From assembly GCA_024704765.1 (NCBI GenBank), contig JAKMXF010000298.1, positions 434,001-498,000 on the forward strand: a stretch of DNA of 64,000 bases, read 5' to 3'. Position 1 is the first letter of the stretch. Each line of letters starts with the position of its first letter. Position numbers and translations under genes: made by a program. This document shows positions 17,441 to 23,164 of the stretch, one piece after another. The notes beneath the pieces were generated by a model, which was not told where the DNA came from, did not search any database, and saw only the letters and a program-made list of their open reading frames with translations. This DNA is from Oopsacas minuta (Eukaryota; Animalia; Porifera).

Positions 17441-18038
17441 GATAACCTAGAATTATATCAACTTTAGAAAAATAATCGTTTAATGAATTGAGGGAACTCG
17501 ACATGCTACAGGTAAACCACGGAAAGCGGCATTAGTGGTTAGCGGTCGCAACGAGCCGAAACTACCCGATTTAGGGCATAGAGGCCCCGAAGTCCGGTCT
17601 GGCCTGACGCATACCCACAACAACATAGTTGATAATATTTTCTAAAATTTAATGAAAATTTAATGAACCAGATCTTACAATCAGTAACTGTGATTGGATA
17701 CAATTTCAATGATGATTTTAGTAATTTAATAGCACTGTTCGTTTGAAATGTTGATGGGGGCGGGGACATTAGGAGTGTGCTCCCAAATCTTGTATCAATT
17801 CTTGGCTAATCATACCTCGTGCAAACTTATCGCATAATGACGCAGAGGCATCACTCACACTGTCTACACAAAGTAAAATAAGTAGCATAAATTCTAATTG
17901 ATGAACAATAGAAACAACAAAGAAACAAAAATATATGTCTAAGCCTTCGGCAATTTCGAATTCTTTATTAATTAAAGATAATAAAAAGTATAGATAGATC
18001 GTCAGGAGTGTTTTGGTTGAATTCAAAAATGTGAAACA

Positions 18039-20528
18039 TCAAAAGTATGAAGTAATTAAAGCTTGTAATCTTGTCAATTCGACTAGCTGTAATTGACTCT
18101 TGTTAATTTGTGAAGTTAGCTTATCTAAAAACGACTGTGCTCCCTTGCAAGCTATGACATCATCTTGATTAAAATCTCCACTATTAACAATCCCTCTCAA
18201 AGCGATACAGAGCATCGACTCAAATTCGTGAATGACACTCATTTCGATCGGTACTCGAAGTTTAGAATTAAACCCTATGGATGAAGCAATAGCTTCAAAT
18301 TTCTGCTCATCATAGCCAATTTTTAATAATTTAATCAATTTCTTGTCAGTAGCTACTTGAAAAGGGTAATTTCCATACTTATCAAGATGTAAAAGTAAAG
18401 AAGGGCCTCCTAATTTCAATAGACAAACACATACATCTATATTACCATACTTGGCAGCTAAATGCAATGGTGTAACTCCTGTTCTGCTCTGAATAATGTT
18501 AAAATACTTTTCAGTATCAAGTGAAGTCTCTACGATAGCTTCAATACTAGAAACTTTTCCATACCAACAAGCTCTTAATAGAGAATTCCAATTTTTATCA
18601 TCAAATACATTCGGTTCACATCCAGACAGAATTAATTTTCTAATATTATTACAGTCACCGAGTTGAGAAGCTTTTATCAATCGATTCTTTAAACTATTAG
18701 AAATTGTCGTTTCAGTGGATTCAACTACTGAATGTTTTGGAAGGAAATTAGTGTAGTTCGTAAAAAAATCTCTCAATTTGGGAGAGATACATTTATTATT
18801 TGACGGAGAAACCCCAATTTCTTGTAAGCGTAATTGTGCCATATAACCAGCAAACCATGGCGGATTAATACAATCTAGTAAATGGGTATGAGGATTTGAT
18901 TTAACTTCTGTGAGATGTTTATGGAATTCTTTAGCTGCCTCATTAAGCCACAAAGAATCGATATTTTTCCTAGCACATTCTAGCACAAGTCCAAGCATTC
19001 TAAACAATGTATGAATCAATGGACAAGGTTTAGAGATTAATGTGCAAACTAATGCTGTAAAATCCTTAAAATTATCGCTCAAATTGCAACGAGATTTTGG
19101 CCAGAATAACGATTGAGTGAAGCTCACACTATTCGGCTGGGAATAAGCCAACTCGCTTTCTATAACGTCACAATACAGTTTCAGTATACAATCATGTGTA
19201 ACTTCAATATACTTTTTGTTACACAGAGTTTGAATTGAATTAAGCAGAAGGTCCCATGTAAAGATCTCCTGGTAGCAGACAGCGTTAGCAAATGTACTAG
19301 CTGGATGTGTCTTTATGACGTCACATAATAACGTAGCTGTCTGTATTATAGTGGTAACATCCTGTGTTGTGACGAGATATGTAACAAGTGGTGATAATAG
19401 AGTTGTAGATATTATAATGCGTGGAGTTGTGATACAAGCACGTACGAATTGTAAGGAATTAATCTTAACGAAACTAGTTTGACCTTCTAGCGGTAGGTTA
19501 ATAGTGTCATCAATCCATTCATTAGGAAGTTCACTACCTTCAATATCGTGTTCAGGAGTGAAATTATAAATATAATCTGGGGTTGTGTATAGCTTTCTAT
19601 TACTCTCGAGTTTCTCTAAAGTGAGAACAGATATATGTGAGGAGAATAAGATAGGTGTTGGAGCGAGGAACACTTCATCTGACCAATTGCTTCTTGGTGT
19701 TTGAAAGTTTTCAAAATTCGAATCAGCTGATGCGGGAGACGTTAAACTGTGTTTATCAGTTAGGCCAACTATTTTGAGTCGTTCTGCTAATTGAGAACTT
19801 GTTGAACTGTCCTTTAGGTTATCTTTTCGTAAGAAATTTAATTCTGGAAGAGAAGAGGATTCATCATATTTAGAAATTCGTGATTTTCTAAGAGGTGATT
19901 TATAATTAGAAGCAAATAACTCCACTGTAGTAACGTCAGTAGGTAACAGGTCACTAAATTGAATATCTGAGTTATGAAACTGGTTGCTATCGTAATCACA
20001 ACCATTTTCATCCTGTTTATATGTTATGGGTGTCAAGCTTGGAGAGATCTGTACTAATCCATTGTATCTTGAAACATGTATACTAGAGCTAGCACGTTTC
20101 GGCGTTGATTGTTTAACATTGTTCGGAAGTGCGTTCAAAGGGGAATTTAGTTTTTTAAACGTATTTTCCTGTGTTTGATTAAAATTAGGTTTATTAGTTG
20201 GTGAAAATTTATGATGTGCGTTTCGATCTTTGCGAGTTAATTGGTAACGTGGTGAGCTAGTATAATCGTGTTTCTTGTAAAGACACGAAGTGGATTTAGA
20301 GCGGTTGGGTGTATAGAAAGGAGTTTGACAATCTTTTATACGTTTAGGAGGCGATTCGTCATCAGAATCACTTATCACAATTTCGTCAATAAATATGTCT
20401 GTAAGCCTTTTGGGCTTACATAGTACAACTTTTGGTGTAGTTAAGTCAATATTTTGTATTAGTTTAGGTGTTGTCAGATCTATTAAGGTTTCTATAGAAG
20501 ATTGTCTCTTCTTGGTGGGCGTCTTCAT
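18039..20528 (-). CDS. SLF1: SLF1/ANKRD32-like protein: disordered SIM- and S/TP-rich N-terminus, helical middle, C-terminal ankyrin repeats, 829 aa, single exon
   Basis: C-terminal GVTPLHLAAKYGNIDVCVCLLKLGGPSLLLHLDKYGNYPFQ resembles the SLF1 ankyrin region (GVTPLHDAL...LLQHGGPVLL...GELPLD, recalled); no BRCT domain recognisable. Confidence 0.55.
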   Translation of the reverse strand: MKTPTKKRQSSIETLIDLTTPKLIQNIDLTTPKVVLCKPKRLTDIFIDEIVISDSDDESPPKRIKDCQTPFYTPNRSKSTSCLYKKHDYTSSPRYQLTRKDRNAHHKFSPTNKPNFNQTQENTFKKLNSPLNALPNNVKQSTPKRASSSIHVSRYNGLVQISPSLTPITYKQDENGCDYDSNQFHNSDIQFSDLLPTDVTTVELFASNYKSPLRKSRISKYDESSSLPELNFLRKDNLKDSSTSSQLAERLKIVGLTDKHSLTSPASADSNFENFQTPRSNWSDEVFLAPTPILFSSHISVLTLEKLESNRKLYTTPDYIYNFTPEHDIEGSELPNEWIDDTINLPLEGQTSFVKINSLQFVRACITTPRIIISTTLLSPLVTYLVTTQDVTTIIQTATLLCDVIKTHPASTFANAVCYQEIFTWDLLLNSIQTLCNKKYIEVTHDCILKLYCDVIESELAYSQPNSVSFTQSLFWPKSRCNLSDNFKDFTALVCTLISKPCPLIHTLFRMLGLVLECARKNIDSLWLNEAAKEFHKHLTEVKSNPHTHLLDCINPPWFAGYMAQLRLQEIGVSPSNNKCISPKLRDFFTNYTNFLPKHSVVESTETTISNSLKNRLIKASQLGDCNNIRKLILSGCEPNVFDDKNWNSLLRACWYGKVSSIEAIVETSLDTEKYFNIIQSRTGVTPLHLAAKYGNIDVCVCLLKLGGPSLLLHLDKYGNYPFQVATDKKLIKLLKIGYDEQKFEAIASSIGFNSKLRVPIEMSVIHEFESMLCIALRGIVNSGDFNQDDVIACKGAQSFLDKLTSQINKSQLQLVELTRLQALITSYF

Positions 20529-21665
20529 AGCAATTTTATTGAGGATCTAACGATAGCTTAACATATAAGGATTTTGATAAGGTAGACTACGCTTAACTTG
20601 GATACGTTGGCTTATCACAAAGTCCCAATTAACACATATAGTAGAACTTCACTAAGTGGGGGGAGGTTGAGCTAGCGAATTTCCTGTCTCCATTTATAAT
20701 TTCAAATGTAAATTAATGTTAACAAGAGATTTTGAGTGAATATGTATAGCCACTTCATTTTAACGGTATTCGATTTAATATAATATGCATTAAGGTTGTT
20801 GGTTGAATATAAGAAATTTTCTTCTTAGGAACCAAAACTTTCAATTCATCATAGCGATAAATAAGTGCTATTTTTTTTCCAAATTTAGCACAAAAATTGA
20901 TTATTCAAGAAAATTTTTCGTTAGAATTCCTCACTTATAGAGGTAAATTCAATGGTGAGACGATGCCTCATTCCCCACTTCCCGCTTATAGAGACCCCAT
21001 TTATAGAGCTTGTACTGTATTTTCCAATATGAATATCCCAATTAAATGTACACTATTAGTATTAGACATGTTTATGCAGTAACGCTCGTTATCTCGAACC
21101 CTTGTATCATTCTCCCAACACTTGATTTTCACACATCAAATCGAAATACGACAAGTTGGTAAAAGTAATGAGAAACTCATGTACAGAGATATGTATGTAC
21201 GAGCCCATCAGTTTACATGGACAGCCAACAACAATTAGAGCTATAAAGATCCCATCCCATATAATCAAACACCCCAACTCCCCAAATAGTCTTACTTTAT
21301 TCATAATTGTTAAAATTTAAAACTTCCAACGTAAGCATGCCCATTGCACACGCATCTCACCAGCCTTGCACACAAAATTAACTTTACACTAGCATAGAGG
21401 TTCCCAATTTGTCGGTCCACAGAATGTGTAAAATTGGTACAGGGGTCCACAGGTGAGAATATTGGGAATAACTGCACTAGCATGTACTAGCATATTCTCT
21501 CTATTTTAAACAAGTTATTACAATTTGTCGAACAAGTTCACTTTTTCCGAAAATCAATCTTAAAACTGGGAGAAGGAAATGTTCAATAACCAAGAGCTAT
21601 TGTAATTAAAATGAAAATTCGAATCCTACAATATAAGATAAACACTTAAGTAATATAATATATGA

Positions 21666-23164
21666 TTATTTTTTTGTTCCTCGCTTAGTTCTAACTTTTG
21701 ACTGTTTTCGGTCAACTCTAACTTTCTTAGCTTCACTTTCAGTAGAATATTTGTCTTCTAAATTATTCAGAAAAGATTCTACACGATTTTTCCCATGAGA
21801 TCTAATCTTAGCAATTAAACTACTTTCATTATCAAAATCAATTCCTAATTCTTTTTGTAACTGTTTAGCCTCCTCAGATTCACGAATTGCTTTCCTTTTC
21901 CTCTTTTCTTGTTTCTTCTTTGATTCTGTGAACTTCTCATAAACAGGCAACTCACCAGATCCAATAAAAGGAGTCAATAGACTACGAAATCTATCATCAT
22001 CACTATATACACTACACATCATACTCTCTAGTATCATATCCATATCTCCTTCATTTGTTCTATAACACTGTTTCAAGTCTGAGAGCTCATCCTCACTCTC
22101 TCTGTATTGTTTGGAGAATTTATCAACCTCTTCAAGCAGGATCTAACCGAACAAACTATACAGTTAAATCAAATAAGCAGGTACTGATATCATTAAATAC
22201 AGAAAACCTCCAAAAGACGGAAACTTTTTCTCAGTCTTAGAATGCTTTACACTGATACATACAATGTCCTAAAAAGTAAACACCTCTCATATGTGAACAT
22301 TTTTGGCTGGTCCCCATGGTGTTTACTTCGTGAAGGTATTACTAAATAGGATACATTGCTGCAGGGCGGGTTTAGGTTACTTTGACTAACTCGTAGCTTT
22401 TCAAATACAACTAATGAAAGTATTACAGTGAAACTCAGATAAGACGTACTCATTGGGGAAACAAATATTAGAAAATACTTTTCCAGTGTATGTCATTTTA
22501 AATAGGAATTTTTAAAATGGAAAAAATGAAATTTGGTTAGAAATAAAGGGTGTGTGTTAACCGAGCATTCTCTGGACAGTAACATGTTGATTTTGTACTA
22601 ATTTCAGGCTCCTTTGTCCTTTAGGGCTGCGAAATGGGACTTTTAGCTGCCCGAATAGCACCTAGATATACTCCTGCATCAAGGATATTATAATTATCGT
22701 CCTTGATGCAAGAGTCCTTCGTCACTCAATATAAATGCTCACCTATGTATCTAACCTATTACCTTAGGATATATGACTTTCCAATACTCCTCCCAACTAT
22801 CTGCTCCTTCGGGACAACTCATCTCACTCTCCATCTGAATAACACCAAACTTATCATACTCTCTCCTCCTAGCAGGATCACTCAGGGTCTGATACACCCT
22901 CCCTAACAGCTGGAACTTGTGAGTAGCTCCCTCTCTATCCTCAGAAGATACTCTATCAGGATGTATCTTGATGCTTAACTTATGATATGCTTTTCTTAAA
23001 CAAGTGATGTCACATGACTTATCAGATAGTTGTAATACTTCGTATAATTCTGATGTTCCGAAGCAGTCCTGTAATTCATCTAGAAAATGTTTAGAATTAT
23101 TCTCTCCCACTTCAGTGTCACTCTGTGATGATGAAGAATTGTGAATTGTATCCTTAGAAGCCAT
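21666..23164 (-). CDS. DNAJC9: DnaJ subfamily C member 9, 2 exons (23164-22763, 22142-21666), 292 aa
   Basis: J-domain with HPD motif, WEEYW, spliced ILLEEVDKFSKQYRESEDELSDLKQCY...GDMDMILES, C-terminal FLNNLEDKY. Confidence 0.9.

Follow-up and report, generated by a model that had tools for sequence, protein, structure and literature searches.

A probable Nse5-family protein of the glass sponge Oopsacas minuta with an SLF1-like layout and candidate SUMO-interacting motifs in place of BRCT domains

Gene model, neighbours and orthologues

The window analysed here is a stretch of 64,000 nucleotides of Oopsacas minuta contig JAKMXF010000298.1. It contains on the minus strand a single open reading frame for an SLF1/SIMC1-like protein of 829 amino acids (18039-20528, Table 1). 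Six stand-alone orthologues (823-870 amino acids, 43-56% identity) were found in other assemblies and are taken to belong to other glass sponges because the gene order is shared. NAT10, DNAJC9, the SLF1/SIMC1-like gene and prohibitin follow each other in all three loci examined, as they do in the window. All three of these loci carry the gene as one ORF that starts at its own ATG, and its distance from the preceding DNAJC9 ranges from 204 to approximately 1400 bp; in four species DNAJC9 lies on the same strand 0.2-1.4 kb upstream. Conservation counts given below refer to seven proteins, that of Oopsacas and the six orthologues.

The ORF is contained, identical in sequence, in an O. minuta protein deposited at NCBI (P0001, 1118 amino acids) under the label 'DnaJ-like protein subfamily C member 9'. 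In the gene model behind P0001, the upstream DNAJC9 is joined to the SLF1/SIMC1-like ORF by an intron whose terminal AG lies shortly 5' of the ATG, and the exon begins at 20546. Four public sequencing runs contain DNA of the window. None of them is recorded as RNA, and X4 alone is RNA-like in its behaviour, DNAJC9 showing a GT..AG joint between 22142 and 22763. The SLF1/SIMC1-like ORF is spanned in X4 by two joint-free contigs (18000-19209 and 19180-20558), the second of which passes the acceptor of the fusion model and takes in an in-frame TAG 7 codons 5' of the ATG. In-frame stops upstream of the ATG are present in both loci checked (L001 and the window). A joint from DNAJC9 to the ORF is not reported in X4, which as a set of contigs does not prove its absence and carries no information on transcript levels or ends. 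For the transcript form in X4, an upstream in-frame coding exon is excluded, and nothing in this run supports the fusion. The deposited fusion model was rejected on the in-frame TAG, the separate contigs and the stand-alone orthologues with their own ATG; P0001 wrongly fuses two separate genes, DNAJC9 being a gene of its own, and the misfused entry of that name is hereby put right.

An incomplete or fused gene model, with additional exons of the real protein lying upstream and coding for BRCT domains or DNAJC9, is very improbable: the splice of P0001 onto the AG upstream of the ATG, approximately 30 N-terminal residues present in all six orthologues but missing from the Oopsacas protein in the alignment, and the contig break at 20558, a possible sign of splicing in the 5' UTR, are countered by the TAG inside the RNA-like contig, by DNAJC9 exon contigs distinct from those of the ORF, by orthologues with a conserved N-terminus of their own (MSQV...) and by a tblastn search of the window for the missing residues, which gave nothing. 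A BRCT exon spliced in from upstream, considered in the initial annotation, is likewise implausible given the close DNAJC9, the own ATGs, the in-frame stops and the TAG in the contig.

Table 1. Features of the SLF1/SIMC1-like locus in the window (residue numbers refer to the 829-residue protein)
Feature	Position	Strand	Evidence or remark
SLF1/SIMC1-like (Nse5-family) CDS, intronless, complete	18039..20528	-	829 aa + stop; ORF list, six orthologues, RNA-like contigs
Helical segment after ankyrin insert, 92 residues, conserved	18042..18317	-	
Ankyrin repeat domain (ARD), residues 605-737, four repeats, inserted in solenoid	18318..18716	-	Pfam Ank_2, PDB ankyrin matches, 8pef_A register
N-half of Nse5-like alpha-solenoid, residues 331-604: two-strand hairpin loop, then 13 helices	18717..19538	-	
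N-terminal region, residues 1-330, S/T/K/P/N/D-rich	19539..20528	-	Composition, shuffling, conservation islands; no Pfam domain
Conserved linear motif LLPTDVTTVELFAS (residues 194-207)	19908..19949	-	9/14 residues invariant across orthologues
Candidate SIM 3, acidic CK2-type tail and basic patch, IDEIVISDSDDESPPKR (residues 47-63)	20340..20390	-	Alignment
Candidate SIM 2, NIDLT (residues 26-30)	20439..20453	-	Oopsacas-specific copy of IDLTTPK unit; not in six orthologues
Candidate SIM 1, LIDLT (residues 15-19)	20472..20486	-	Alignment, motif scan; human SIMC1 FIDL/VIDL class
In-frame TAG before start codon	20547..20549	-	Within RNA-like contig ending at 20558
DNAJC9, upstream neighbour: DnaJ and HTH_DNAJC9 exons, GT..AG intron 22143-22762	21666..23164	-	Pfam, run X4 joint, synteny

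Candidate SUMO-interacting motifs in the N-terminal region

Ankyrin repeats (612-730) are the only Pfam domains of the protein. The tandem BRCT by which SLF1 binds phospho-RAD18 was found neither in Pfam, even at E<=1, nor in the precomputed Pfam results of the six orthologues, nor in the upstream locus, so that the initial annotation was correct in seeing no BRCT. Residues 1-330 are, judging from their composition, probably disordered. Only 15% of the columns in this region are invariant, and these are clustered as islands (IDLT, IVISDS.DES.PKR, LLPTDVTTVELFAS and SSQLA).

Three SUMO-interacting motifs (SIMs), LIDLT, NIDLT and EIVISDSDDE, had been proposed for the N-terminus and were located at the residues given for candidate SIMs 1 to 3 in Table 1. 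IDLT is invariant in 7/7 proteins, in the form [F/Y/L]IDLT followed by TPK. The two IDLTTPK units of Oopsacas differ at 6 of 21 nucleotides, every change being synonymous (P about 1e-5 under random change), which indicates that both copies are maintained by selection on the peptide. The best-conserved island of the N-terminal region is the third candidate, with I47, I50-S55, D57-S59 and P61-R63 invariant in all seven proteins and IVISDS[DE]DES present in each of them. It lies approximately 25 residues past the IDLT SIM and has a hydrophobic core and, behind it, serines in an S-x-x-D/E context. Phospho-regulated SIMs exist, e.g. in PIAS1 and PML, and by analogy IVISDSDDES is a putative CK2-tunable SIM.

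The count of 18 S/T-P sites in the N-terminus was reproduced for residues 1-330, the remaining 499 residues containing only 5. Composition-preserving shuffles gave 5.6 +/- 2.0 sites, and 18 was reached in none of 5000; the orthologues have 15-20 sites in this region.

In human SIMC1, the functional SIMs are FIDL (26-29) and VIDL (45-48), and the protein no longer localises to PML bodies once they are mutated to AADA (PMC9708086). The FIDLT, YIDLT or LIDLT of the sponge proteins sit at a comparable N-terminal position. By motif match, the earlier assignment as SIMC1-type SIMs holds, [F/Y/L]IDLT belonging to the same class as the experimentally validated FIDL/VIDL (PMC9708086). The tandem arrangement of [F/V]IDL-class SIMs in an N-terminal, probably disordered region is, on the same motif match, likewise that of SIMC1.

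The ankyrin-split helical body

Residues 331-829 were modelled with AlphaFold2 on the seven-sequence alignment with medium confidence (pLDDT 73, pTM 0.61). The model runs from a short hairpin through 13 helices and a four-repeat ankyrin domain to 4 further helices. The ankyrin repeats, described as C-terminal in the initial annotation, are an insert, and the conserved helical segment of 92 residues follows them. In human SLF1, the Nse5-like solenoid (410-1058) is split by an ARD (726-935), and the helices resume behind it with alpha14 (PMC9708086). Compared via this published layout and the SIMC1 alignment, the sponge ankyrin insert also stands before alpha14, and the modelled order of 13 helices, ARD and 4 helices agrees with the layout of human SLF1 in both helix count and insertion point.

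With the 499-residue model as query, the best fold match in the ESM Atlas was a chordate SLF1 cluster (TM 0.54, 335 residues aligned, model residues 4-499), the matches listed beside it reaching TM 0.34 or lower. The nearest language-model neighbours of the full-length protein were seven chordate SLF1 clusters (0.92-0.93, 187-188 of 256 features). For the N-half, plant SNI1 (the plant NSE5) was nearest (0.91), and for residues 1-628 chordate SIMC1 (0.90), by a method that is uncalibrated for protein parts; scores near 0.90 arise in 4-10% of shuffled proteins. CANIN (SLF2/NSE6) clusters were weak, lower-placed neighbours in both part-length lists. In structural alignment the N-half was placed onto SIMC1 468-787, a range that reaches 857 once the C-half is added, at an identity of only 10-12%. 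Four separate searches (48,161 chains or 7.7 million clusters) had SIMC1, SLF1, SNI1 and again SIMC1 as top matches. The Nse5-like alpha-solenoid of SLF1, which had been suspected in the middle region, is thereby recovered in fold and language-model comparisons.

At the level of sequence, the alignment profile of the N-half had no match in the PDB at E<=10, and its HMMER profile, run exhaustively against 1.84 billion representatives, retrieved three glass-sponge orthologue clusters and nothing else. HMMER profiles revealed no homology to SLF1, SIMC1 or Nse5 proteins, and a word-based search with residues 320-829 yielded, past the orthologues, unrelated ankyrin proteins only. Fold and language-model searches can hence recover the Nse5 family where HMM searches fail. 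The fold searches were not uniform. When the 499-residue model was compared with the PDB by Foldseek, DARPins and ankyrin domains dominated and SIMC1 was absent among the matches listed. The N-half by itself, in a TM-based search of the Atlas, retrieved generic ARM/HEAT proteins (TM about 0.5) but no member of the Nse5 family, and yeast Nse5 and plant SNI1 were absent from the structural top lists.

The H4K20me0 pocket of SLF1 is formed by E808, D838, W842, E847, N850, D874 and D881 (PMC11551741). In the ungapped HMMER register to 8pef_A (SLF1 ARD), W842 and D838 are kept as W647 and D643, while R652 falls on E847 and W655 on N850; the register presumes that the chain of 136 residues includes three from a tag, as the match of W on W supports. 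Mapping via the ankyrin consensus, by which the ANK1 and ANK3 positions were inferred, places L690 at D881 and about K614 at E808. W647 is invariant, and the E847 position holds R or K in 7/7 proteins; across the sponge proteins N850 is changed to W, C or Y and D881 to L or I. Of the acidic pocket of SLF1, this domain retains only a part, and the pocket as a whole is not conserved. The ARD was rejected as an H4K20me0 reader because the glutamate of the lysine channel is replaced by a basic residue, and it probably reads a ligand other than unmethylated H4K20. Among the ankyrin matches, 8pef_A ranked 12 in one search and 23 in another, and BARD1 was among the better natural sequence matches to ANK2. 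Many ankyrin domains are equally close, and the sequence of the ARD is not distinctively SLF1-like. The proposed resemblance of the ankyrins to SLF1 therefore stands for ARD and solenoid taken together, which group with SLF1 in fold and language-model space, but not for the ARD sequence alone.

Proposed role, alternatives and known systems

With good confidence, the protein is the Nse5-family protein of glass sponges, has an SLF1-type architecture and likely recruits SMC5/6, with candidate SIMs in place of the BRCT pair. The hybrid put forward in the initial annotation, SIMC1-type SIMs joined to the ankyrins of SLF1 without BRCT, is a reading supported by these results. The predicted alpha-solenoid of approximately 17 helices, split after helix 13 by the four-repeat ankyrin domain, would most likely pair antiparallel with a CANIN-domain SLF2/Nse6 partner, through which an SLF1/SIMC1-like protein may act as the recruiting subunit of SMC5/6. 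Two or three conserved candidate SIMs, [F/Y/L]IDLT-TPK, which Oopsacas has twice, and IVISDSDDES, which carries CK2-type serines, are surrounded by approximately 18 putative proline-directed phospho-sites. Judged by motif class, position and conservation, this array of SIMs could bring the complex to SUMO-rich chromatin sites and be modulated by phosphorylation, both proline-directed and by CK2. Recruitment would then most likely be SUMO-dependent and phospho-tuned, like that of human SIMC1, and not phospho-RAD18-dependent, because BRCT is absent. The ARD may add a second ligand, probably not H4K20me0.

Whether SMC5/6 acts on damaged replication forks or on DNA of viral or extrachromosomal origin is determined by Nse5/6-type loaders, and in humans SUMO-directed recruitment serves antiviral defence and plasmid silencing. 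To our knowledge, these fast-evolving loaders have been recognised in yeasts, plants and vertebrates only, and none of the papers searched connects Nse5, SLF1 or SIMC1 with a sponge or any other non-bilaterian. The union of a SIMC1 targeting module with an SLF1 body in a non-bilaterian is a test case for the origin of both vertebrate recruiters and for whether SUMO-directed recruitment is the older animal mode.

How this union arose can be read in two ways. A rewiring within the hexactinellids, whereby the BRCT pair of an ancestral SLF1 was dropped from a compact genome that was losing genes, and SIMs arose independently by convergence with SIMC1, is a serious possibility, short of an even chance; the sponge protein would then be uninformative on the SLF1/SIMC1 ancestor. 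SIMs are short and evolve easily, one having been newly duplicated in Oopsacas itself, and in its pocket the ARD departs from the consensus of SLF1/BARD1/TONSL. By the title of its report (bioRxiv 10.1101/2022.07.26.501511), the Oopsacas genome is a compact one from which core genes are missing, which fits such a loss. Against this reading are the position of the SIMs at the extreme N-terminus with an [F/V]IDL core as in SIMC1, and the SIMC1-likeness of residues 1-628 as a whole in language-model space. SUMO binding may moreover be old, yeast Nse5 being a hub of the SUMO pathway (PMC13167486). The other reading, which is rather doubtful, is that the sponge protein keeps the ancestral animal Nse5 architecture of N-terminal SIMs and an ARD-split solenoid without BRCT. 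SIMC1 (SIMs kept, ARD lost) and SLF1 (ARD kept, SIMs lost, BRCT gained) would in that case be subfunctionalised duplicates, and animals would have loaded SMC5/6 through SUMO before the phospho-RAD18/BRCT route was added.

Improbable is a sponge-specific nuclear scaffold unrelated to SMC5/6, composed of a generic ARM/HEAT-like solenoid and an ankyrin domain with a chance resemblance to SLF1, and binding SUMO for another purpose. The absence of sequence homology outside the glass sponges, the likeness of the N-half to generic solenoids at TM about 0.5 and the unconserved H4K20me0 pocket are in its favour, but the Nse5-family proteins on top of four separate searches, and a helix count and ARD insertion point equal to those of human SLF1, speak against it.

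With human SLF1 (ANKRD32/BRCTD1), which is closest in global fold (ESM Atlas) as well as in language-model space, the sponge protein thus has in common a four-repeat ARD that splits an Nse5-like alpha-solenoid with 13 helices before and 4 after, together with the ANK2 residues W842 and D838. It differs in its length (829 versus 1058 amino acids), in the altered K20me0-binding residues E847, N850 and D881, in a solenoid without detectable sequence similarity, and in having SIMs where SLF1 has the tandem BRCT that reads phospho-RAD18. Human SIMC1 (C5orf25) has a continuous solenoid without ankyrin insert, whereas that of the sponge protein is broken by the ARD at 605-737, and the phospho-SIM-like motif IVISDSDDES is an addition of the sponge protein. 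Yeast Nse5 and plant SNI1 (NSE5) are alike in fold at the family level and in the presumed role as partner of Nse6/ASAP1/SLF2. SNI1 clusters are language-model neighbours of the sponge N-half, and yeast Nse5 is tied to the SUMO pathway (PMC13167486), as presumed for the sponge protein; both differ from it by the lack of an ankyrin insert, and no sequence similarity to it was found. The ARDs of the H4K20me0 readers BARD1 and TONSL share with the sponge ARD the four repeats and the tryptophan after the ANK2 glycine position, but not their acidic lysine channel. The sponge protein is without two features that define SLF1 (BRCT and K20me0 pocket) and one that defines SIMC1 (the continuous solenoid). 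Its fold, the position of its insert and the class of its SIMs agree with these relatives, and it represents a new domain variant within an established family.

Gene model and gene order

The deposited NCBI protein P0001 joins DNAJC9 to the SLF1-like ORF via an intron, by which the stop codon of DNAJC9 is bypassed. A single fusion gene of this kind was rejected, since both the orthologue loci and the RNA-like contigs of one public run indicate that DNAJC9 and the SLF1-like ORF are two separate genes. The order NAT10 - DNAJC9 - SLF1-like - prohibitin (- kinase) is kept in four assemblies (window 16518-41000 and the orthologue loci L001, L002 and L003), with all genes on the same strand and separated by short spacers. 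Since DNAJC9 is a chaperone of histone H3-H4, its conserved pairing with a predicted SMC5/6 loader targeted to chromatin may not be due to chance alone.

In the intergenic stretch at about 20690-20920, contig depth in the DNA-like public runs was 5 to 15-fold higher (780-940 compared to 50-165). Numerous alternative joints and loose ends were also present there, a pattern suggestive of a short dispersed repeat or a fragment of a mobile element.

N-terminus and disordered region

The N-terminal approximately 30 residues (MSQV..QNCTNT..SSKD) conserved in six orthologues are absent from Oopsacas, where the protein starts with MKTPTK. A break of the RNA-like contig at 20558 adjoins an AG and may represent a 5' UTR splice site. 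The conserved motif LLPTDVTTVELFAS lies in the middle of the putatively disordered region (residues 1-330), and SSQLA forms an additional island (residues 244-248).

Features at the SLF1-like locus
Feature	Window position	Strand	Residues	Remark
P0001 (deposited model)	20546-23164	(-)	1118 aa	named DNAJC9
Shortened Oopsacas N-terminus	20529-20560		ORF 1-5	orthologue comparison
Conserved linear motif LLPTDVTTVELFAS	19908-19949	(-)	194-207	9/14 residues invariant

Neighbours of the solenoid

The closest language-model neighbour of the solenoid N-half (residues 331-604) was an uncharacterised arthropod Atlas cluster (rank 1; 527 aa, 64 members, without Pfam), tied with plant SNI1. The cluster could be an unrecognised arthropod Nse5.
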